A stretch of 64,000 nt of DNA from Klebsormidium nitens. Lineage: Eukaryota; Plantae; Klebsormidiophyceae. The stretch is from positions 13,055 through 77,054 of the forward strand of contig DF237355.1 in assembly GCA_000708835.1 (NCBI GenBank). The letters run 5' to 3'. This document shows positions 36,619 to 51,469 of this stretch, piece by piece. The notes under the pieces were generated by a model that saw nothing but the letters and a program-made list of their open reading frames with translations, ran no database searches and had not been told where the DNA came from. Numbering within the stretch: position 1 is the stretch's first letter; each line of letters opens with the position of its first letter. Both the position numbers and the translations under genes were made by a program.

Positions 36619-39600
36619 TTAGGCACATGCTGCAGTAGCGCCCGGGGCGGCGACGCACGCCGTGCGGCAGCAAACGAACTGGTCGCCCGCGGCGTTGAAG
36701 CACTGGTTGGGAAGCCCCGAGTACGGGTCACACGCGCGCGGTGCGCGCGCAGAGGCAGTCGGGGCGGGACTGCCGGCTGGCCCGGGGGTAGCGGTTGGTG
36801 GGGTCGTGGGACCGCACGACGCGATCGAAGGCGGGGGCGAGAGACACTGGAGGAGACCTCCACAACTTGTCAGAGTTTTGCTTGCAAGTGGCTCTTGTAA
36901 ATCTAAGACGGCCCCCCCGATACAGCCTTTTTAATTTGAACACTTACCAAAAAGTCTTGTTTCTTCCAATCTTCCAAGGCCGTGAGAGGCATGTTCTGAA
37001 TGTAGGCCGAATGAAGTTGGATCAAGGCGGAACCGTCACGGGCTCAGCCAAGTCCTCAAGGAGAACGCTCTGGAGCTGTTAAATCCGCAGACACAGCCGT
37101 CGAATCAATAGTCGAGAAGCATTTTTGACGGCTGCTAACTTTCACTGAGTGCGAATGACATAAGGTCCACCGACGGAACCCACTACTCGTTCAATGGTCT
37201 CCACTTGTTTCGTTCTCTAAATTTTCCGGCGCAGTTCCGAAGATCGGTCCGAATCGCGGGGATACTTCCATCACCCGGTCGGACATGTGCACAGAATCAA
37301 TGTGTCCAGGAGTGTCCGGTCTGGTGTCCGGTGTCCGGTGTCCGCGGCGGCTCACCGGATTGCTGCAGCAGACGAAGGCGTCCCCCGCGGCGTTGAAGCA
37401 CTGGTTGGGGTCGCTGCCATAAGCGTCGCACGCGTCTATGATTGGGGCGCTGCTGACGGTAGGAACTGTACACGTGGGATTCGGGCGGATATGTATATCG
37501 ACATGAACGAAACAGAGCACAGGATCATTCTTAGCAAAAGGAAGAAGGTGTTTGCAATCGGCGAGGCTGAAAGGAATTGAAGCAATATACGAGCGCCAAG
37601 CGGCTGGTTCGGGTAAGGACTCGGGCAAATAACAGTAGATTTTCGGTTAATAAAACCCTCGCTGTCGCTGTCGCTGAAAGACTTGGAGCCATTTGCATGA
37701 AGCAGCATTCTGAGAAGAGATTTCCGCCGGGCGAGTGCTGCTGAAGTTCGGCGGAACAACGGAAGGCTGAAGCCTGACGGAACAGCGGAAGATGTGAGTG
37801 GACCAGACGAACGGGTCAGAACGGAGTAAGAGCGACCCGTCTCGCAAAATTTTTACACGTCATGGGTTTCATCTGGCGCGGTACTAATTACTAATGTCTG
37901 GAGACTGTCTTTCTGTTTTTGGTTGTGGCTATAGTCTCGGTGGAATCCAATCGCTCCGTTAGCAACGGCAGAAGAAACGAGAAGCTTTCAGTGCGGGTTG
38001 CTTTGAGAGTTGCTTCGCCGTTGAAAATGTGCAGTTAAAGAAAATACATTATCCAAAAGGTCCCTATCATTCTGAAACCGTAAATGACACGCGGCGGCGA
38101 ATGTTTGACTATGATGGAACTCTGCCACAGATTCCGCCGGGCAAACGCCTTTCCGGCGGATCGAAGGTGCGTGGCCCGGAATGTAAAGAAGGCCCAGACA
38201 GCCTCGGGGTTTAGGTTTGGGGTCGACTTACTCGGGGTCGTTCCGGTGGGACTAGTTGTTCCGGTCGGCACGGTTCCGGTCGGCACGGTTCCGGTCGGAG
38301 TGGGGACCGCTGTCAGAACTGGCTGGTACTTGCCGCTCGCACAGGTAGGGAGATTGTTTACGGTCGGGCCACAGGACTCCGGATCGCAGCAGACGTAAAG
38401 TGCACCCGACGGGTCAAAGCACTGCAATCAAGAGCAAGCACGGTTCGAATTGCTAGCTCTCAGAATCGCTCTTACAGTCGAACTATGCAAGAGGGGACGT
38501 CGGAAAGAGAGGAAGCTTATTTTCCAATGTAATTGATATCCTTGCAATCCAGGCCTGGCGAGATTTGCCGCGTGCATCGTGGGAGCAGAAAAATTCTGCG
38601 GATATTTCGTCTGGCTGTCGTTCTCAGTCCAGGGGTGCGACCAAATGGCCATCTCGTTTTCTTGTTCTCGAGACTTACTACGAATTACAGCTCAATGCGC
38701 CGTGCGAACGTTGTAGGACTTTCAATCCTTGTCGGAGCGGACTCGCTGACTTGCAGTCGGCTTGACGGGCGGATAGGCTGATGTGAAGACGGTCTATACC
38801 TCAAACCAGGCTAAAATATACACAGCTTGCTTGATTCAAGCTTATATATGAAAGTCGGATATCTGAAGCTGACACTTACTCTTCAGAACGGTGTGCCGCT
38901 TATTCGAACGACGGACCAAGCAAACGGTCTCCGTTTCATCTGAAGATAGAACTAGTTGGCAGCGTTGAACCTCGAGCATAAGATCGGAAGGGTCTCGGGC
39001 CGACTTACCTGGTTCTGAAAGTAGGACAGGTAGTCGCAGGTTCCGCCTGAACCATTGTATGAACCCAGTGGTTAGCGACGGTCAGGTGAGGCTGGTTAGC
39101 ACTAAGGTCAGGTCACTTTCCCGCTTAACCGGTCATGAGCGGAATAGCTTAGCCTAGCTAAGGAACGGGCGACGAAGATTACAAGCTGAAAAACTCTTGA
39201 CCGAAACAGCCGAAGGCTATGGTTTCTTTGACCTGTTCAGGGCTTTAGCCCCAGAAAAGGAGCCACTCCTTGGCTCTCGACGATGAAATCAACGGAAGTC
39301 CTAATCTGAACTTCGGAAAAGCAATAGCATAAAATCGATGGAGGTAGGTAGCCAGTACGGTAGAGCAAACAAGAATACGCACTGTCTCCGGGGAGCATCG
39401 TCTGAATCGGCGTCAATCACGGTCCGCGAGAGAGTCCAGAATGTCAAAAAGCACCTTGCAGAAGGGTCGCCACAGTTGTAAAAGCAGGAGCCGAAGTTGG
39501 GCTCAGGGTCGTAGGAGCGGGGGTGGTCGGGACGGGGGTGGTCGGGGCCGGGGTGGTCGGGGAGGGAGTGGTCGGGACTGGAGTGGTCGGGGCGGGGGTA

Positions 39601-42600
39601 GTCGGGGGCCGGGGTGGTCGGGGTGGGAGGTGGGTCGGGGCCGAGGGGTGGTCGGGGCGTGGGAGGNNNNNNNNNNNNNNNNNNNNNNNNNNNNNNNNNN
39701 NNNNNNNNNNNNNNNNNNNNNNNNNNNNNNNNNNNNNNNNNNNNNNNNNNNNNNNNNNNNNNNNNNNNNNNNNNNNNNNNNNNNNNNNNNNNNNNNNNNN
39801 NNNNNNNNNNNNNNNNNNNNNNNNNNNNNNNNNNNNNNNNNNNNNNNNNNNNNNNNNNNNNNNNNNNNNNNNNNNNNNNNNNNNNNNNNNNNNNNNNNNN
39901 NNNACGGACCGGTACGGGTAACGGTTACGGGAACGGTTAAGGGTACCGGGTAACGGACGGGTACGGGTACGGGACGGGACGGGTTCGGGTACGGACGGGT
40001 ACGGGTAGTGGTCGGGGCTGGAGTGGTCGGGGAGGGGGTGGTCGGGGAGGGGGTGGTCGGGGCGGGGGTGGTCGGCGCGGGTGTGGTCGGGGCCGGAGTG
40101 ACGCTGTCCGGGCAGCTCAGGGGGCTCAGCGCGTACGTATCATTGGTGTTCGAGAACACGACGGCCGTTGTCACGGAGCTGCAGCTCGCGTCGTTCAGGA
40201 AGAGGCAGTAGCGAAAGGCGCTTATGTAGTTGAAGAGCTCGCACTTGGCCAAGCCCGCCTGGACGCACAGTGTGCAGCACGTGGCGTAATCTGGCACCCC
40301 CGTGAGTACGGTCGTGGGCGGGGTGGGTCCAAAACCGCCCACTGAACCCTGTGGAATTGCGAGCTGGCCATTGACCGGTGGGACTGCGCCGGTGCATCCG
40401 CTCCGGCATGGGGTCGGTTGAGCTGGCGACGGGGACTGTCCAATAGTGGGGAACCCATCGCGGCAGGCGGACGAGGGCGCTGATGTCGGGACCGGGGGTG
40501 CATTTTCTGAAAAGATAAACGAAAAGATAAACAGCAACTTTCTTACATAGAAAGTCAGAAGTTTTGGCCGTTCATCAAGCTTCTGAAATTGCCATTACAA
40601 CTAGCTCGGACTTCGATATATCTATTCAACTAGCCTGCCACAGAATACAAACTCCTGTTACTCATATATGTGCACTGAATCGGTTAGCAGTGGTGCGTGC
40701 GGCAGCCAAAGACGCTCAAGATAGTTGAGCACTTTTTGGCAGCTTGTTTAATTCAGGAAAAGCCGGTAAGATGACGTAGGCAAGAACGGAAATCATTATT
40801 GAATCTGATTCACGAGGATCAAGATGGCTAGTCGACCAGGGACATTCGACTTCCAGAGCTTGGCCAGATCCTGAGCGCGGGCTTTCCCTCAAGCGCGTCG
40901 CAGGCTGAAAGTCCTCAAAATCTCTGCGCACAGCAGAAAGCCTCCTTGTGAACAAGATGCAGGATGCTCACCTGAGGCCGTCAGCGAGATGTCATCCACG
41001 AAGACGAAGGAACTGCTTTGGCAGCTAAGGAACATCTGGGCGCTCGACCCGGACGATTCGAATTGCAGAGGTCCAATCTGCTGGAAGCTCGCAGCGTCCG
41101 TGGGGTTATCATTGGCAACCCGATAGACGGTCTCAATGATCCCGGATTGCCTGAAATCGACGTTGCAGGATTGCGACGTGCTGCCCGCACTTGTGTTGGC
41201 TGGTGCAATTGCGAGCTTGAAGTATAGTACGTAGTTCGTACCTGTTCAAGAACGCGCGTCGGGGCAAAGATTCAAAAATCACCCACATGCGACATTATTG
41301 CGTCTTCAGGTGGATTCGAATACACCGAGCCCAGAGAGCCAATTGGGAAAAAGAGGATATGTGCACGGCAGTGGATTTGTGATGAAATGCCGCCTGCAGG
41401 TTGCTACCACCTCAAAGTCACGTCAGCTCATCATTTGTGGAACATTGAAGTTCTTTTTAAGGTGAATACGGCAAAGGCAGACCCTTCTAACAGCCTCAAT
41501 GCATGCCTTCTCAAATCGTCCTTCAAAAGCTCCTCAGTAGCACCTCTGTTGACCTCCAGCTGTAGGGCAAAGCTGCCTTGCAAAGTCAGATTAGCTTGCA
41601 GTGACACTCAGGCTGCTGATCACCTGCTGAAGTTGCAAAGGTCTGCGACAGATAGGCTCCTCCAGACTCAACGAATGCCGCTGCGTAAGTTCCAACTGGA
41701 GTTGGGAATGAAGCACCCGGGGGAATGGGCGGATACACAATCAGGGCAGGGGCAAAATTGCCATCCCAGCCGCTAAAATCGCCGGTCTCAAAGCCTCCAT
41801 TGACAAGAAGCTGCTGTCCTGCATGCCATCAGTAAAAACAAGGTTAGCAGTACTTCAGTTGAGTAGATCGAGATGCTCACGTTGTTTGGGAAGGTCCATA
41901 AGACCATGAGTGCTGGCCAGGACAAGGTAGTAATACTGCCAACTGGTATTAGCTTCGATGGTATTACAGTAGCGAAAAAGCCAGGGACTGCGCTACCCAA
42001 CAGCCTTGAGCAGCCAAGAGACAACCTGTCTAAAGAAGACAGCCAAAGTGAAATGCTTACTACTATAACAAAATATCTGGAGTACGAACTTGTATGCGCA
42101 ATGTTGCGCCATCTGATTGCAGGAACCCTCATTTAGAGGCAGCCAGAATCTTACACTAGTAGGTGTGCTACCAAGCTGCACATATCACTGTTTGAATGAT
42201 TACCAACATGAAAGCAACTTATAGACGACCTCGAATGACCAAGCGTTTGTGTGCACTATAACACCTCTTGATTACTGAATCAATGTCAGGCAATACCCAA
42301 GGCGGACTCACAGCTAACTGTCTTGGCAGTGTTTGAGATTCCTTACGCCCAAAAAACAGCCGGCCAAAGTGCTCAAGGACGATGATGCAAACTAATGAAA
42401 TCATAGACTATGGTTGAATGGCTCATCAACCAGATCTGGCTTGCTGCTGGTTAGCCAAATTACCCCATGGAAGACAAGAGCCAGGTATTCATGGGTGAAG
42501 AGAACAAAGTTGTTCTGCATTGACAAGACCACCCAGACTGAGTTGCTGCTTCAATCCGTTCTTAGTATATCATTCAGAAGCTGTTGACAAGCAGCTGAGA

Positions 42601-43071
42601 CCAGCCAGAGTCCTTAGACAATTCACTGCTGATTTGAAGAAAAGAAACTTCTCAATCATCAGAATTGAGAGTTGAATGAAGGATACCGAAGCTGATGACC
42701 GGGGGCTGACGCGTTGTTGTGATGCAAACTAATGCAAATTATATGGTTCTTCTGTGTTTAACTTGCCTCAAAAGAACTTTCAGATCCAGACTAAAGAACC
42801 AATTCAAACATTGAACCAAATTTGAACACACTTGAAAACACTTAAAAACCTGCATCTACTCCGCATGCAAAATACAATGCCGCAGCGATTCGTCTCTGCA
42901 GTACGCAGCAAGCTAGGCAATCAATGCAACTTCCCCAACCACGATCCAACTTGAAGGAACAAATCTTTCACCTGCAACGGGCGTGCTGATGGCAGCCTGC
43001 AACAAAAGGGCCGAGAGCACCACCAAGCTGAGTCCAGACACCCGCCTCAACTTCATTATGCAGCCCGCCAT
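36619..43071 (-). CDS. Secreted modular protein: signal peptide, CBM4/9-like jelly-roll, PAN/apple-like domain, PTTPA mucin stalk and three 6-Cys modules; exons 42972-43071, 41624-41818, 40972-41241, 39455-40506, 39009-39046, 38232-38421, 37356-37465, 36619-36846
   Basis: Signal peptide MAGCIMKLRRVSGLSLVVLSALLLQAAISTPVA. CBM-like LLVNGGFETGDFSGW...GTNYVLYF...FVFVDDISL. PAN-like CCTLC..C..FNY..CLFL. GT-AG junctions are phase-consistent. The stalk exon is interrupted by an N gap. Confidence 0.82.
39500..40100 (-). repeat. 15-nt coding tandem repeat (PTTPA/PTTPS)
   Basis: g(g/t)ggtcgggg units on the + strand lie on both sides of the gap. Confidence 0.9.
39667..39903. other. Assembly gap (237 N) within the tandem repeat
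   Basis: Run of n in the sequence. Confidence 1.
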
Positions 43072-43719
43072 CACTGCGCACCAATATTCCGTTGTTGTCC
43101 AGACGAAAGAGGCCCCGCAGTCGTGAGTCTCCTTGAAGGCTTCAGATTGACGTGTGCCAAAGTGCTTCTAAAAGACAAACAGAAGTGCGGAAGCGAAATC
43201 TTTGGTTGCAAATGGGCCCAATGCGCTGGAATGGCGCCGGAAAGCTGCAATGCGGAAGGGTCAACGTTGCAACTGCATTGCATCAGACGCTGAATCGTCA
43301 CAACTTATGATAATATTAGTCGTATTGGAGAACGGGAAGTCACAAACTCGCTCTCTTTTCCGCCTCCCAGCTCACTGTCAGTCTGTGTCCTGCAGTGAAT
43401 CTTCCGGAATGAACTGATTCCTCATGTCCACCTTGATCAATCAGTCGTATCAAAATCTTCTCGCAGAGGACTATTGGACCGTCTTTCGAAATCAGCCGTT
43501 TCTGTAGTTATGATTTTACACGTCCTTTTTGAAACGAGTTCGACTTCGACCAGCCGGGCGACCAGCTCAGTTCTAGCGACAATATGGCTCGGAGAACTTA
43601 GGGCCGGGTTCTGTGCAGCAGAATCCCCTGTGAATATCGCGGATCTGATTGATCACCTAAACAATCTCCTTCCTCTGTTTCTCCAAGTCCCGAAGGAGTC
43701 CCGATGTTAGTATTGTTTA

Positions 43720-45660
43720 ACTTGATGTACCAGTACTGCCGGTGCAAAGCGTTCGTCAGAATTCTGCTGGTTATACGGGGCAGTGGTACGGCCCCTAGCC
43801 TCTGGTACGTCCTACCCAATTCGGCAACAAAAGACTGGTTTTCCAATTTGAATACGTCTCAACTTTCAAGTCTCCGAGTCCGAGTTGCGGAGAGATCTGC
43901 GGTCACATTTCCAAGACTCCCCTTTTCATGCCTTCTGCATTTCCTCAGGGATCTTTCAACTCCGTCCTATCAGGATCGATCAACTTGCATGCATGAGATC
44001 GACAGTACCGTACCCTGTACGGTCACCTCGTGAGTCGTGTCGGGCCAGGCGAATAAATTTCCGTACAAGACGGTAAAACCAAGACCAGTAAATTCTCAAG
44101 AGCTGTACGGAAAACTTGACTCGACAAAAAGGTCCTGCCGGGAAATCCTCTCAAGGTACTTGTAAAGCCGGTACCATGCCGGTATACCTACGACGTTTTA
44201 AACCGGGGGCATTGGGGGAACCGGAGAAATCGACGGTCGTCAGTACACTAGGTAGCTAGTACCAGCGGTCCTGAGCAGTGAGCGGTGTTTCAAGTTTGCC
44301 CCGAGCATTGGGCCCTGGCCCCCCGGTGGCGGCGTGATGCGACGCCGTCTTTGCAATGTATCCACCTGTACAGTATCCTGCAGGGCCGGTATCCTTCCAT
44401 GCACGGTAGAGGACAACTTCCTTCCGAGTCGCCTCGTATTAGGTACCTGGTAGGTCGGAAATTCCGACCTACCGGTACCAAGTACGCTATACCTCATATC
44501 TTGAAGCTGTACCCCCCGGGGCTCTGCCAATCACAATACGATAACTGTTGAAACTTGAGGGGGGGGAACCTTGCATGGACCAAGGTTGGATGGTCGCCGG
44601 AGCGCGGGTGCCAGACCGCACGGCGGCCCCTGGGAGGCGGCGACGACCTCGACTTACAAGGATACACCGGCCCTTTTTACCCCGCACGCGGCAGGACCCA
44701 GTGCACAGTACGGCGCGTACGGCGCATTCTGTACGCGGCGGCTCGACCTGAATTGGCTTTGTGACTCTGACAGGGGTACTGTAGGACTCCGAAGCAGTCG
44801 GAAGTACCGTACGATATTAACCTAGGCCCTTCGGTAGTCTACAGTTGTCTAGCACTGGTACCGTAGGATGTACGATTTTTTGCAGGCCAGTTCCGAAGTT
44901 CTGCACGCGGTACACTGCGGCCTGCAGCTTGCTCCGGCTAGAGCAGGTACTGTAGGTACAGGGTTCGTATGGCTGAGCAGTGAGGTCAATGTCTTCTAAG
45001 TTTAACCTACCGGTAATTACTAAAGAGTGGGTACGGTACTTTGGTGCTTCTCCAGCATACAGGAAGTAGGAACACAACTTTGCCAGCAGACAGGATCCCT
45101 GTCACAGGTAGATTGCCGCGATTTGGGACTGCCTGTGGCACGCAGGCTATCATTTCCCGGCCGTTCATTAGCGTGGTCACCAAGCCATTCCGGATCGTCG
45201 ATGACTCAAAACCCGGTAAAAGCGGAGCAGAACCTTGTCCAGTAAAAACGGGCTAAACTGTGCAGACTGGAGGCACTCAGTGAAATCCAGCCAATAGGAA
45301 ATGAAGACCGAGTGCGACAAAACGCGGCGATCTACCTGTCATGTTCAAGATTTGAAGCCTCTACAATTGATCCTAAAAGCTTGCTCAATGCCAATTCATT
45401 CAGAGTCCAGACTACCTAGCTAGCTGGGAGCTGCTCTGCCGGATGATGCTCCTAGTGCCTGAACAAGCCAGTCGGTAAAAGTCGAAATAACGTCCTGCAC
45501 CGTGCAAGTCGCTTGTATTTGTACCGTACAACTTAGATACTTATGTAGATCGCACTTGTACACAAAGTACTGCTCAGGGGCCAAGACTCAAGAGAACTTT
45601 TTGGAGGTACCTACGAGTAACGGGATCCTGATTCCTGACTTGTACGTCGGTAGCATGGAT
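43720..45660. other. GTAC-dense non-coding island between the divergent secreted-protein genes
   Basis: About 37 GTAC by hand count in about 1.95 kb, against about 8 expected at uniform base composition. Confidence 0.7.
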
Positions 45661-45771
45661 ACGTCTGACAGGCCTACACTACCGGTAGTGCGCCTGCACT
45701 ACCGGTAGTGCGCTCGATTCAAAACGTCAGAATATCCTGTTGGCGATTATCACTAGTGTATCTCAGGCTCA

Positions 45772-46218
45772 GGGCCTGGTCGCATGCCGCCAAAACCGAC
45801 AGATTTCGATAGAATGTGTCGGTTTTGGAGCGACCGCATGACCGCATGCCACCAACACCAGCAGAAAGTACTATCGACGCGGGGGAAATGTTCACTCATT
45901 GACCGGAAAACCAACAGAATCTGACGGGCTAGCCTGACGTCCAGCCAGAATCTGTCGGTCCCAAAAGTCGCAAACCGAGCACTTTGTAGGGGAGACTCAT
46001 CGACTGCTACTGCTCGGTAGGTCCTGAGATTTTTCCAGCTTTTTTTTGTTCGATTAAAATCTTTATTTCGATGCCGACCGTTCAGCTTCACCAACACTTA
46101 TCGAACAGCGACGTCGAAAACTGTACTTTGCCGTACAGACCACCGGGCCACCTGGCCAAAGTCAACCCAACACATTCTGTCGAAATCTGTCGGTTTTGGC
46201 CCGCATGCGACCAGGCCC
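45772..46218. mobile_element. Tourist/PIF-Harbinger-like MITE (447 bp)
   Basis: About 45-bp TIRs gggcctggtcgcatgc..ccaaaaccgacagatttcga(t/c)agaatgt. A 3-bp TSD, TCA, lies at 45769-45771 and 46219-46221. No coding capacity is evident. Confidence 0.85.
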
Positions 46219-46759
46219 TCAGCCTCTCACAGTCATGTAGTCAGGGATAATCTGACCCCTGACGTCAGCTATGCAGCATGCACACTGCGATGACAATACG
46301 TAGATGAGATTCTGAATCTGTGACCGCATACGGGCCACATACTTTGACGAGAAAAATGGTCCAAGGAAGCAGAGGAAAGCAGTGCAAATCGGTTGCGCCC
46401 CAGTGCACCAGATACTCTCATCCTTCGACAACGAAAATGAAGCAAGGGCTCAGGTGGCAGTGTCTTTGCATTATGCACCAGATTACCGGTCCATATTCTC
46501 TCAAACGATACGAGCTCGGATCGATCCGGAATCGGTACTCGACTAGTGTGCTGCATCTACGATTCGAAGCCTGAGCTGCCGACCTGCAAAGCCCGAGTCT
46601 TGCACACACGGGGACCATCCTATGTAAAGACTAAAGCTATATATTCTTTAGGCAGGAGCAGCTTCTCTTTCATTCAATGATTCAACGCCCCCAGACTTTC
46701 CGAAACTTTTCTCCAAGGTTCTGAGACCAGAGGCGCTTCTACCTACGGGCGCTTCCACA

Positions 46760-49700
46760 ATGTCGTCTCTTTCGAAGCATCCCCGGCTCTCCGTACCCGC
46801 CTCTATCCTGCTCGGATCGCTCCTCCTTTTCTTTGCGAGCTCTATTTCATATGTGGGGGCGCAAGAGGGTCCCACGTCTCCCCCGGGCCCCAGCTTTCCC
46901 CCGCTAGTTCCCTCGCCTACCCCCCTCGAGTGCCCGGATGGGGAGAGTTCCTACAGCTTCAACGGCACCATGTGCTGCGCCTATGACCGGACCTGCTTGA
47001 TCGGGGACCCGTTGAACCCTTCCCTTGCGACCGGCGCACTCTGCTGCCCCCAAGGGGCACTCTGCGTCTTTGACTACACCTCCTTTGCGGCCTGCGTGAC
47101 CCCCCCCGCTGCGCAGTGCGCGTCCTGCCTGCCTGCCAATCCGAATTCCTTCGATCGCTGCAGTCTACTGAAGTCGGGGGACTTCTGTTGCTCTCAGCAA
47201 ACCTGTGGGGGGTCCATTGCGGACTCGAGGTCGGGCTTCTGCTGTGACAAGGGCTCCAAGACGCAATGCACCTTTCCCCTTTCAGTGATAGCCAGTCCCT
47301 CTGCGGTCACCCGGTGCTGTGAACCAGGGCAAGTGATATGCGAAGACCGGTGTTGCAGTCGAGCAAACTGCATCAGCCCAGGTCCTTTGGGGCCCTACAC
47401 GTGCAACGAGCCAAGTGAGTGAATGGGCCACCTTGACCTGAGTGAAATTTAGCTCAAGACCTGTTAGCACTGCATCTTAGTATGGAGCACCATAGGCTAC
47501 AGTCCTAGCCTTCGATGCAAGGCCAGTGGCGTTGAGCAGTAAGACTGCCTGTGAAGCGCTGAGGCCCATAGGCCTCATTTGAGAGAGTCGGTTGCTCTTG
47601 CTGCTTGGACCCACTAGTCCTGACTGGTCGCACACTTGCAATGCTTACCATTACTGTATCGTGTCTTGTTTGTGAGCTTTCGTGATTCTTTTCTGTGAGA
47701 GGACTGCGTCTGTATGTGGATACCAACATGTTGTGGGCCCTTTGGGGGACATCTTGCCCTCCGCTACTGAGCTTTGGATATATAAGATCAAGCCAGACTT
47801 TCATGTAGGGCTTAATTTGAGCTTGGGGATCCTTGAGCAACCTGCAAGGGTTTGAACATGCCTATTCCGATTGCTGGTTTGTCATCTCCGAGTCTTGTAT
47901 GGTCATTATTCGAATGAAGTCAGAACCTTTGAAAACCCACTATATCAATGACGGATTTGGGCCATCTCTTCTTCAAAGGCTGATTTTCTTTCGTTGTACC
48001 CACTGCACTTCTCAAACCATAAAAGTAGCAACCTCTGAGGCCCTGCTGATAATTCTTCTTTGCAGTCCCCACAAATGCGCCCCCCCCCCCCAGTCCCAAC
48101 GATTGCCGCCCCCCCTCCCGTCCAAACACCTGCGCCCCCCCCCTCCAATCCCCACCCCGACGGGTCCTTTCCCTACATTTGCGACAACGGAAGGAGGAGC
48201 GTAAGCTCACGTTCTCCTGGATCTCAGTACCAACAATGCAGGGTTAAGCATAGAAGATATTGGGTACTGAGGCTTACAGGGAGGAGTCCATGTGTTGAAG
48301 AATAGGAAAAAGTTGTTTTGTCCGTTAGGCGGATTCTTCACAGCTAACACAAAGAAGTGGGCTTCTTGAAAAGTTCTTACCCCAAGGTCGGGTCTGTACT
48401 CATGTGTAATCATGTGTAATCTAACCTACATGTGTAATCTAACCTCAACATAAACCTCTGTTCTGCTTCAAAAGATAGAGCTCCAAATATCTGAACACCC
48501 CAGCATTTGGTAAGAAAGTGGTCCACGTGGGCAGGTGACGTCACCCCCATAGATTGGTTAACCATGCCACAAGTCTATCTGGCACGTCGTTAGTGGGCCG
48601 AAAGATCTGACAGTCAATGCAAATTGTGTAGTGCTGCTGAGGGAGCAGAGTTGGTAGGGGTAACAGTACTCTAACTCTTTGCTGAAATTGCCGCGGATAG
48701 GAGACTTCTTCTACGTAGAAGAACTCTTCATTCTAGGAATAACTCAAATCTTTGTGAACCTGCTCAATATCCAGGTTTCGTAGAACGTGCATTGAAGCTC
48801 GCACTAAACCCTACACATCACTTTCTTCTTCTTTTCGTGGACAATATCGTGGAATAACAGTAAAAGGACTTCTTGAACCAAAGAGTCGAGTCTTCTTTTG
48901 TCTCGATCACTCACTCAAAACTCGGGGGAGCGTCCGAAATGAGCGTTCTCACCCACCTTTCAGCCGCAATCAGCTCTACTCGAGCTTCACGAGAATCCCG
49001 AATCGCCCGTCAACACCACCCATAGGAAATCGAGACCCGGAATTCAATACACTTTTCAGAATGGGCAGGGAGCTGGATTAAGTTTAGCAGTAGTCCGAAT
49101 GAGGGAACTTTTCAGACTACACTGTTCTTATGATTTAAAGTACATTTCTAAAGCGCATATCACCTAACACAGGGGACTTTTCAGTCGGCAGCTTTCTTAT
49201 ATTCCTTTTAAGACTGTACTTTAATGGGCGGCTGATTTGTAGTGACCTTTTCAATGGCAGGTGCGACCCGTTCTCGGCGCTCCCCTTCACGTGCTACAAC
49301 AACGCCGGTACGTCCTTCGCTTGCTGCCCGGACCCGAAATGCCCTTCCCCGGGCCCAGTGCCAAGATGCGCCGGAGAAACCGCGGCTCCGTCGACTCTAG
49401 CACCAACTCCAACGCCAACTGTAACTTCCCCCATTCCAACTGTAACTACCCCCATGCCAACTGTAACTACCCCCACGCCAACTGTAACTACCCCCACGCC
49501 AACTGTGACCACTACCCCAACGCCAACTGTGACCACTACCCCAACGCCAACTGTGACCTCTACCCCAATGCCGACTGCCACCACGGCAGCGCCAGCTGTC
49601 ACGACCGCAGCACCGGCCCCGACTCCGACAGTTACTCATGCCACCGGCTCTTATGTGTGAGCCCCTTCCAGATATTTCTTAGTCAAGCGCCCCGCACTCC

Positions 49701-51469
49701 TCCGTCGTACCTCGTTTTGCCCTAAGTCTAGTCGCCGGCGCACTGCAAATCGTTTTCCGAGTCCGGACTGCGCTCGTGGTTCATGCCGGCCTAGAATGGG
49801 ATTTAGACCCCGTCTGCAGACAAGGGCTCGTCGAAGAAATAAGGTCATGCTCACCGTTCGAGCTCTCTGGTCCCGCTCTGAAGTGCTTGAATTTCGGGCG
49901 ACGTGTGCTTCTAAATGAATCGAAACGACGGGGCAACAACGGACGACGTCTTCAGGTTCAAATGACGTCTCGACTTGTTGGTCGATACGTCTGCTTGGTC
50001 TTCCTTTTACCGTGCGGTTTCTGCTTTCCTCAAGCGCGCGCGCCAAATAGAGCTGTATTCTCGCCATCTTCAGCTCGAGCAGTCTTGTCTAACTGCGGCT
50101 CAGCAACTCGCAGTGCCCGTTTATTCTGTCGGCCGTGACGTTGAGAGCCGTTACTTTCGCCTTTCCGCTTGCCCAGAGAGAGTGTACTGGTAGTTGCTGT
50201 CGTCGTGGTTCGCTTGCGACGATACGGTTTTTGGAACGGGCTACGAACATTTGCTTTCAGCACTGCTTATGGGCCTTTGTTTATTCATCTCTTCCGCTCT
50301 CGGTCTAGTGTCGGCTCATTGCTTTCCTCTCCATCTTCGCATGGTAATGTAAGCTGCCGCGCATCACTCTCTCATCTCGAGCACGTTTTCGAAGCTCGCC
50401 GGCCGAAATTTCCGGCCAATTCTTCACCGTTGACCGTTTAGTGGCGCCTCTCGAGTCTCGATTCTCGGGCACGCCGTGTACGCCTTGGGACATGACGTTC
50501 CGTTCCGTTTACGCCTTAGGACCTGACGTTCCGTTCGGTTTAAGCCTTAGGCCTTAAGCATGAGGACGTGGCATATTTTTCACGCAGGTGCGACCCATTC
50601 TCGACGCTCCCCTTCACGTGCTACAACAACGCCGGCTCGTCCTTCGCTTGCTGCGCGGATCCGCGCTGCCCAATCCCAGGCCCGACGGCTAGCTGTGCGG
50701 GGGATCCCCCCGCCCCTCAGCCAACCCCTACACCCACACCAGCTGTCACCACCGGAGCGCCAGCTGTCACCACTGCGGCGCCAGCTGTCACCACCGGAGC
50801 GCCAGCTGTCACCACCGCGGCGCCAAGCGCTACGACGCCTGCGCCGGTCGCCACTGTTCCGGCGCCGACGGCCACCTACGTCACCGGCTCTGGCTACGTG
50901 TGAGTGCCCCAATCTCCTTTCCTGATGAAATGTCGCCCTTTTTCTTGAGTCGTTACGTGCCCACCTTCTGAATAGGGTCTGTGTTGAAAATCCGTCTTTC
51001 GAGCTGATCAGGCCTCACCGTGTAATTCTCCATTTCGTGCTACACAATGCACTTTGCCGGGTGAAAGCAGAAGAGTAATCACACAGTGTGCCAAGATGTC
51101 GGTCCAAGAGTCAGCATACAATCTGCCGGATGTCAGAAGTTTGAAGTAATTGAGCTGACACCCAAAAGGGTCCCGGAACATCCGAAGTTCTTTTGTAACA
51201 CAGACCGCGCCGCTCGCAGTTTGACCTTGCTTTTCTTTGGCCCAAGCCTAAATGTTTTTCGGAAGACCCGAAGTGCTTTCTTCCCTGCACATAATAATCT
51301 CTTGATTTTTAATCCTGGTCGCGAACTTCCATCTTGCATTCAACGTTGCAGGTGTGACCCGGCGTCGGCTCTTCCTTACACGTGCTACAACGCTTCTGGG
51401 TCGTCCTTTGTGTGTTGCGCCAAGTCGACTTGCCCCGCTCCTGGAGCCACGGCCGTATGCGCCCCATAA
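46760..51469 (+). CDS. Secreted Cys-rich, Pro/Thr-rich protein with three 6-Cys modules; exons 46760-47414, 48066-48200, 49261-49656, 50588-50899, 51352-51469
   Basis: Signal peptide (ILLGSLLLFFASSISYVGAQ) and a 24-Cys N-terminal region, then three CDPxSxLPxTCYNxxGxSFxCC modules separated by PTVTT/PAVTT stalks. Exon 2 needs frame corrections in its poly-C runs. Confidence 0.8.
49390..49640 (+). repeat. Coding tandem repeat (PTVTT(T)P units, 21-24 nt)
   Basis: ccaactgt(a/g)ac(t/c)ac(t)acccc units. Confidence 0.85.
50735..50830 (+). repeat. Coding 21-nt tandem repeat (PAVTT(G/A)A x4)
   Basis: ccagctgtcaccac(c/t)g(g/c)(a/g)gcg units. Confidence 0.85.

Follow-up and report, generated by a model that had tools for sequence, protein, structure and literature searches.

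The window analysed here is a 64-kb stretch of the genome of the land-dwelling green alga Klebsormidium nitens NIES-2285 (assembly GCA_000708835.1, scaffold DF237355.1); subtracting 13054 from a scaffold coordinate gives the window coordinate. It contains two genes arranged head to head, KFL_004060080 on the plus strand and KFL_004060070 on the minus strand, each of which terminates in three copies of a six-cysteine module. The copies had been noticed in a preliminary description of this DNA, and all six were confirmed in place. The window has a GC content of ~52%, and its open reading frames are short and broken by introns. Using exact look-ups, we identified the plus gene product as P0001 (476 aa) and the minus gene product as P0002 (418 aa), both of which are annotated as hypothetical proteins only. 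The modules in P0001 and P0002, and the splice joins within them, agree with those that we worked out from the DNA.

The gene pair and its six modules

The pattern C-x9-C-x9-CC-x3-4-C-x8-9-C fits six of the six copies, each 36 residues long, and Pro/Thr stalks separate the copies in both genes. A strict six-frame scan with this pattern picked up all three modules of the plus gene and, on the other strand, the last one; the remaining two minus-strand modules are each split by a GT-AG intron. When a hidden Markov model (HMM) of the module was run on the six-frame translation of the whole window, the module places scored 33-65 bits against a best background score of 10.6 bits, with no further copy, and the recurrence of the module is therefore not due to chance. 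With respect to plus module 1, the other plus copies are 78% and 57% identical and the minus-strand copies 32-44%. The last module does lie at the extreme C-terminus of both proteins, the stop codon following one or two residues past the final Cys. We rejected a special meaning for the C-terminal "CA", since the last Cys ends any terminal disulfide mini-domain.

The plus gene is organized as follows.

46760..51469, plus strand: gene KFL_004060080 (P0001), with a signal-peptide-like N-terminus, a 24-Cys head, a Pro-rich exon and three module-plus-stalk exons
46760..47414, plus strand: exon 1, hydrophobic N-terminus and 24-Cys head; the end is set by the phase-1 donor of the paralogues
48066..48200, plus strand: exon 2, Pro-rich linker with three 27-nt repeats and poly-C runs (C12, C7, C9)
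49262..49369, plus strand: plus module 1, first in its exon, with a phase-2 intron just before Cys1 and a Thr/Pro stalk to ~49657
50589..50696, plus strand: plus module 2, same exon design as module 1, stalk to ~50900
51353..51460, plus strand: plus module 3, terminal; stop codon 51467-51469

All 24 Cys reported for the head of the plus gene are present, and all are kept in the paralogues P0004 and P0028. The P0001 model quits exon 1 at ~47227-47229 and thereby drops the final 57 residues of the head, including 8 of the 24 conserved Cys, a stretch that both paralogues retain; by homology with them, the expected end of exon 1 is 47414, in phase 1. With this end, exon 2 is out of register by one base, and agreement with the paralogue passes from one frame to another across the poly-C runs of 12, 7 and 9 bases, owing either to a true frameshift or to a homopolymer error in the draft assembly. 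Each plus-strand module opens its exon behind a phase-2 intron and the module-plus-stalk exon closes in phase 2, a symmetry that makes these exons duplicable. The stalks of the plus gene are 21-nt tandem arrays. The 24-Cys head had no Pfam match, a PDB sequence search with it gave nothing significant, and AlphaFold2 modelled it with a predicted local distance difference test score (pLDDT) of 55 from an alignment of only three sequences. Both proteins had been called secreted, which is well founded for the plus gene with its hydrophobic N-terminus and presumed for the minus gene, where the start is uncertain.

The minus gene has the following features.

36619..41818, minus strand: gene KFL_004060070; P0002 spans 36619-41035 only, and the gene probably extends upstream, with a candidate ATG at 42112 and an uncertain start
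40972..41818, minus strand: candidate "CBM-like", jelly-roll-like head in pieces 41818-41624, 41576-41544 and 41241-40972
40133..40303, minus strand: PAN/Apple-like Cys-rich domain, sub-threshold Pfam PAN_1 match
39453..40100, minus strand: first Pro/Thr stalk, a 15-nt tandem array broken by the gap 39667-39903 and a GTACCC stretch at 39906-40007
39009..39046, minus strand: 38-nt micro-exon with Cys1 and the first loop of minus module 1 (39038-39009); phase-1 acceptor, phase-0 donor
38341..38421, minus strand: remainder of minus module 1, Cys2-Cys6, followed by a short Thr/Pro/Gly stalk to 38233
37356..37430, minus strand: minus module 2 from Cys1 to CC plus three residues, then a GTGAGC donor
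36814..36846, minus strand: Cys5-Cys6 of minus module 2, opening the last exon
36625..36732, minus strand: minus module 3, terminal; stop codon 36621-36619

The splice sites inside the two intron-split modules could be read from the DNA. The micro-exon 39046-39009 is preceded by a CTAAC branch-like site and an AG acceptor and followed by a GTAAGT donor, after which module 1 picks up at 38421; module 2 leaves through the GTGAGC donor in phase 0 after 37356 and resumes at 36846 behind a CAG acceptor. Further upstream the gene is less well defined. The first Met of P0002 (41035) falls within a beta-rich domain, and the open frame runs on upstream (exon 41241-40972). The part of the jelly-roll-like head that P0002 leaves out, taken over all pieces, amounts to ~165 residues. 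The pieces 41818-41624 and 41576-41544, as read from sequence, resemble the start of a jelly-roll binding module. Between them, near 41610, the frame is broken; a 47-nt GT-AG interval would mend it, but a 1-nt indel is at least as likely, because the other introns there measure 400-1060 nt. The head had been described as like a carbohydrate-binding module (CBM), a label that now extends to its terminal motifs only: exon-by-exon Pfam searches were blank, also for beta-jelly-roll families of the CBM4_9/22/61 kind, and the PDB sequence search with two head exons returned a CBM61 N-terminus at a non-significant E of 1.5. The "PAN" label likewise stands as a sub-threshold assignment (Pfam PAN_1, PF00024; E 0.011, 16 bits where the cut-off is 21.4, with 54 of 76 profile positions covered), and the PAN exon had no match among PDB sequences.

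The first stalk of the minus gene is interrupted by an assembly gap (39667-39903) inside the 15-nt array that codes for it. The repeat unit is the same on both sides, which makes continuity across the gap plausible, but the Pro/Thr reading frame differs between the two sides. P0002 splices round the gap, from about 40003 to 39578. Adjoining the gap, between two blocks of the 15-nt repeat, is a degenerate GTACCC hexamer array (39906-40007), which may be low-quality sequence at the edge of the gap.

The starts of the two genes are 4.6-5.7 kb apart, and we found no recognisable feature between them. The earlier suggestion of a two-gene system with shared regulation is unsupported, as the module subtypes and the intron positions of the two genes differ as well; a two-gene system with a common promoter was rejected on the same grounds of distance and unlike subtypes.

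A dispersed module family in Klebsormidium

A profile built from the six copies was searched against 1,835,955,588 representative proteins and gave 25 matches at E<=0.001, 10 of them at E<=1e-10; the 25 include one repeat artefact, P0013. Three more proteins, P0028, P0029 and P0030, came from word-index searches with P0001 and P0003, which returned no named species besides K. nitens. All named carriers of the module are K. nitens hypothetical proteins, the others originating from JGI/IMG samples or Logan read-archive assemblies. The idea that the module is combined with interchangeable heads was borne out, with a wider range than first noted: approximately two dozen secreted proteins carry it. 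Four types of head could be named.

Alpha-carbonic anhydrase (Pfam E 2.9e-43)
GDSL esterase/lipase (Pfam E 3.8e-14)
NAGPA-type phosphodiester glycosidase (precomputed Pfam PF09992)
LTD domain (UniRef name)

The other heads of the family had no Pfam match, and a comparison of eight heads with NCBIfam was blank. Family proteins contain one to five module copies, the final one lying 0-1 residue from the C-terminus in 16 of 26; in a few, modules are directly behind the signal peptide or internal. Most full-length members have a hydrophobic, signal-like N-terminus.

Two subtypes of the module can be told apart by the residues before Cys2, an aromatic-Thr pair in the plus gene and its paralogues and Asn-Gln in the minus gene and most other members. 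The two also have their introns in different places. At the P0029/P0003 locus a phase-0 intron between this Gln and Cys2 splits every module, as in minus module 1 of the window. P0003 (KFL_001660180; locus L008 2399-14214) has five modules and no signal peptide, and its first residues lie mid-module. It begins 98 bp past the stop of P0029, a NAGPA-domain gene that itself ends in two modules; they could be a single gene, or represent alternative 3' ends. Introns of the five-module gene contain module exons in decayed form (L008 12197-12385, 13105-13206 and 13250-13366), which suggests that exon duplication and loss are ongoing.

The paralogues of the plus gene, KFL_000230170 (P0028) and KFL_000230160 (P0004), are head-to-head inverted duplicates (L005 1935-5672 and 10001-13694), each with a 24-Cys head and three modules. 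A glyoxal-oxidase gene adjoins this pair. The public model of KFL_000230160 omits the third, terminal module exon; the exon is intact in the DNA (L005 13587-13694) and ends in Cys-Ala-Pro stop, as in the window gene. The public gene models at the window locus and at two related loci are wrong. P0017 and P0022 also share one scaffold. Such local clusters of family genes point to local duplication and exon shuffling, and the pair in the window is not a two-gene system but one such cluster among several in a dispersed family; that the two genes are adjacent accords better with the way the family clusters in general than with co-regulation.

To assess constraint, we considered the ratio of nonsynonymous to synonymous substitution rates (dN/dS) in the modules of P0001, P0004 and P0028, which was 0.38-0.48. 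The third (position-3) module is orthologous across these three proteins at 81-94% identity. Together these values indicate that the three-module tail is old and constrained. A JGI protein shares 66% identity with a K. nitens member from end to end, which shows that the family exists in at least one diverged relative. Both this protein and the carbonic-anhydrase member are encoded on short contigs with uninterrupted open reading frames, found in a JGI sample and in an SRA run, and such short, intron-free contigs are probably transcripts in relatives. In JGI sample 3300060285, a 147-kb eukaryotic contig encodes a two-module family protein (L001 6001-6609) beside RFC1 fragments; this contig probably comes from an uncultured relative of Klebsormidium.

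Predicted fold and comparison with known domains

The module had been described as unrecognised, and our profile, Pfam, PDB-sequence and fold searches gave no convincing match to a characterised family. Pfam has no family for it, whether searched with module exons (E<=1), with ten family proteins (E<=0.01) or with module-rich proteins (E<=10, spurious rows only), and the module profile found nothing significant among PDB sequences. The Pfam scans took in all module exons, the two heads and 20 family proteins, the intron-split modules being entered piece by piece. AlphaFold2, using a 29-row alignment, predicted the module with a mean pLDDT of 93.3 as built on a central hairpin (residues 11-14 and 21-24), in which a conserved Asn-x-x-Gly turn links the strands. 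Searches with this model returned nothing at E<=0.001 from the PDB (Foldseek) and nothing at Z>=2 from 48,161 chains (VIA-align). The nearest shapes in the ESM Atlas had template-modelling (TM) scores of 0.37-0.46, among them a progranulin model with a TM of 0.43 over 31 residues. For a model of 39 residues such blanks are weak evidence, and they do not prove a new fold. An ESM Atlas feature search gave no usable match for the module or for the head of P0016, and none of the six pattern matches in a metagenome scan for PNQC[FY][ND]A[APS]G was confirmed. Literature searches on KFL gene identifiers, the Klebsormidium secretome and cysteine-rich proteins found no paper on the module. We conclude that the module is a genuine disulfide-type domain, undescribed and lineage-restricted.

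Carried in this way on interchangeable heads, the module has the architecture that an anchoring or binding unit would have. Fungal CBM1 domains, which use a flat aromatic face to bind crystalline cellulose, are disulfide-stabilised, beta-rich units of ~36 residues, placed N- or C-terminally with the last Cys beside the protein end; O-glycosylated Pro/Thr/Ser linkers connect them to many secreted heads, and they also occur in tandem in non-catalytic proteins. The module is alike in size, terminal site, linkers, variety of heads and tandem use. However, CBM1 (PF00734) has four conserved Cys and a CGG...C...C...Q-C signature with Gln and aromatic residues, whereas the module has six Cys, a CC pair and other spacing, and no module or module-only protein matched PF00734 in Pfam searches (E<=1 to 10). 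In the plant lineage, the chimeric lectins of Solanaceae are wall proteins in which hevein/CBM18 modules alternate with hydroxyproline-rich, extensin-like stalks. The K. nitens module is similarly a small Cys-rich unit alternating with stalks, but it contains neither the eight Cys of hevein nor its CCS-x2-G-x-CG core, and it had no Pfam match to PF00187. The module is therefore outside the CBM1 and hevein families and represents an undescribed domain put to a known use.

Three further comparisons concern parts of the architecture. Phytophthora CBEL, a cell-wall-associated protein, combines PAN/Apple domains with CBM1; the minus gene is comparable in having a PAN-like domain followed by three small Cys-rich modules, but the lineages are unrelated, the modules of CBEL are CBM1 and the PAN of the minus gene is only sub-threshold. 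Granulin (PF00396), a stack of beta-hairpins, is, like the module, a hairpin-based disulfide mini-domain with a CC pair, although with 12 Cys and four CC pairs as opposed to six Cys and one; neither the module nor the 24-Cys head matched it in Pfam, and the ESM Atlas TM of 0.43 lies below 0.5. In the walls of green algae, the hydroxyproline-rich glycoproteins (HRGPs) of Chlamydomonas and Volvox (pherophorins, GP1) carry globular heads on hydroxyproline-rich rods. Their globular domains are unlike those of the K. nitens module proteins, and no pherophorin match was found by Pfam among the family proteins scanned.

A candidate wall tether and its alternatives

The domain is real, confidently folded in prediction, under purifying selection, lineage-restricted, unannotated and joined to many heads through duplication and shuffling of exons. 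What it does has to be read from its architecture. Mucin-like or HRGP-type features are present in the window, namely the 15- and 21-nt Pro/Thr-coding tandem arrays and the hydrophobic N-terminus of the plus gene, and both genes would encode extracellular mucin- or HRGP-like proteins whose Pro/Thr stalks, probably O-glycosylated, bear the module copies. Each module of 36 residues would have three disulfides arranged about its predicted beta-hairpin, and Pro/Thr linkers join it, mostly C-terminally, to unrelated secreted heads. The terminal position, the linkers, the many unrelated secreted heads and the tandem copies in non-catalytic proteins suggest, as the most likely role of the module, generic and non-covalent tethering to some polymer in the wall or the glycoprotein coat of the alga itself, a reading to which we give about an even chance. 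Such a tether would keep or position the head, an enzyme or a lectin-like domain, at the cell surface, as fungal CBM1 does. A more specific form, in which the module is a wall-polymer (carbohydrate)-binding family born in the Klebsormidium lineage and a general retention tag for secreted enzymes and lectin-like heads in the wall of a streptophyte that took to land early, is put forward more tentatively, as somewhat doubtful. Covalent cross-linking through the module, which had also been proposed, is unlikely because its six-Cys count is even and conserved. The family is a candidate component of the wall glycoprotein framework that Kondo et al. proposed for K. nitens, the proteins of which they left unnamed (PMC4927632).

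Several observations weigh against a tether. Most of the residues conserved in the module (Cys, Pro, Gly and the Asn-x-x-Gly turn) may serve its structure alone. Among the heads there is no glycoside hydrolase that acts on wall polymers, and only 2 of 5 AlphaFold2 models of the module exceed a pLDDT of 90. For the window genes themselves, sequence searches found no transcript-derived copies of either protein, and both genes show frame problems in the draft assembly.

The strongest competitor, which we nevertheless consider unlikely, is that the module is a protein-protein assembly knob that binds itself or other wall glycoproteins and builds a glycoprotein coat instead of binding a polysaccharide. 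The globular ends of Chlamydomonas and Volvox HRGPs build a coat of this kind, and the stalk-knob-stalk architecture with 2-5 modules per protein, including P0003, which is almost wholly modules, would suit such a role, as would the glycoprotein framework proposed for the K. nitens wall (PMC4927632). Against this, the single C-terminal copies on the carbonic anhydrase and the NAGPA-type glycosidase resemble tags, not building blocks, and oligomerisation is without support. It is less probable still that the module is a ligand-free, compact disulfide cap or spacer that protects the ends of O-glycosylated stalks from proteases. Mostly structural conservation and a usually terminal site would be expected of a cap, but the non-Cys positions before Cys2 (Asn-Gln or the aromatic pair) are conserved across distant heads, the module is used N-terminally and internally as well as C-terminally, and dN/dS is below 0.5.

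Two remaining explanations appear very improbable. The C-C-CC-C-C framework of the module agrees with the framework of knottins, or inhibitor cystine knots (which pair their Cys I-IV, II-V and III-VI), and is common to many knottin peptides, and P0003 is a tandem array of five modules, so the modules might be precursors of knottin-like bioactive peptides, antimicrobial or signalling, excised from polyproteins; however, no conserved processing sites flank them, and the carriers are for the most part enzymes or large domain proteins in which one to three copies occur. That the two window genes are decaying pseudogene copies of a real family would account for the break near 41610, the frame changes at the poly-C runs of plus exon 2 and the missing transcript-derived copies, but 36 of 36 module Cys and 24 of 24 head Cys are intact, the splice sites round the modules are all canonical with matching phases, dN/dS against the paralogues is 0.44-0.48, and the breaks, in what is a draft assembly, adjoin repeats, homopolymers and a gap.

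Klebsormidium is a key model for how green plants came to live on land, and its wall proteins are essentially uncharacterised. The faulty public models at the window and two related loci matter to users of the K. nitens proteome. An orphan domain on about two dozen secreted proteins, including a carbonic anhydrase of periplasmic type, offers a handle on how the wall is built and populated. If the module binds a defined polymer, it would constitute a new family of binding modules and supply streptophyte algae with a tag for surface display, and if the retention-tag interpretation is true, it would be an independent solution for holding apoplastic proteins in place out of water.

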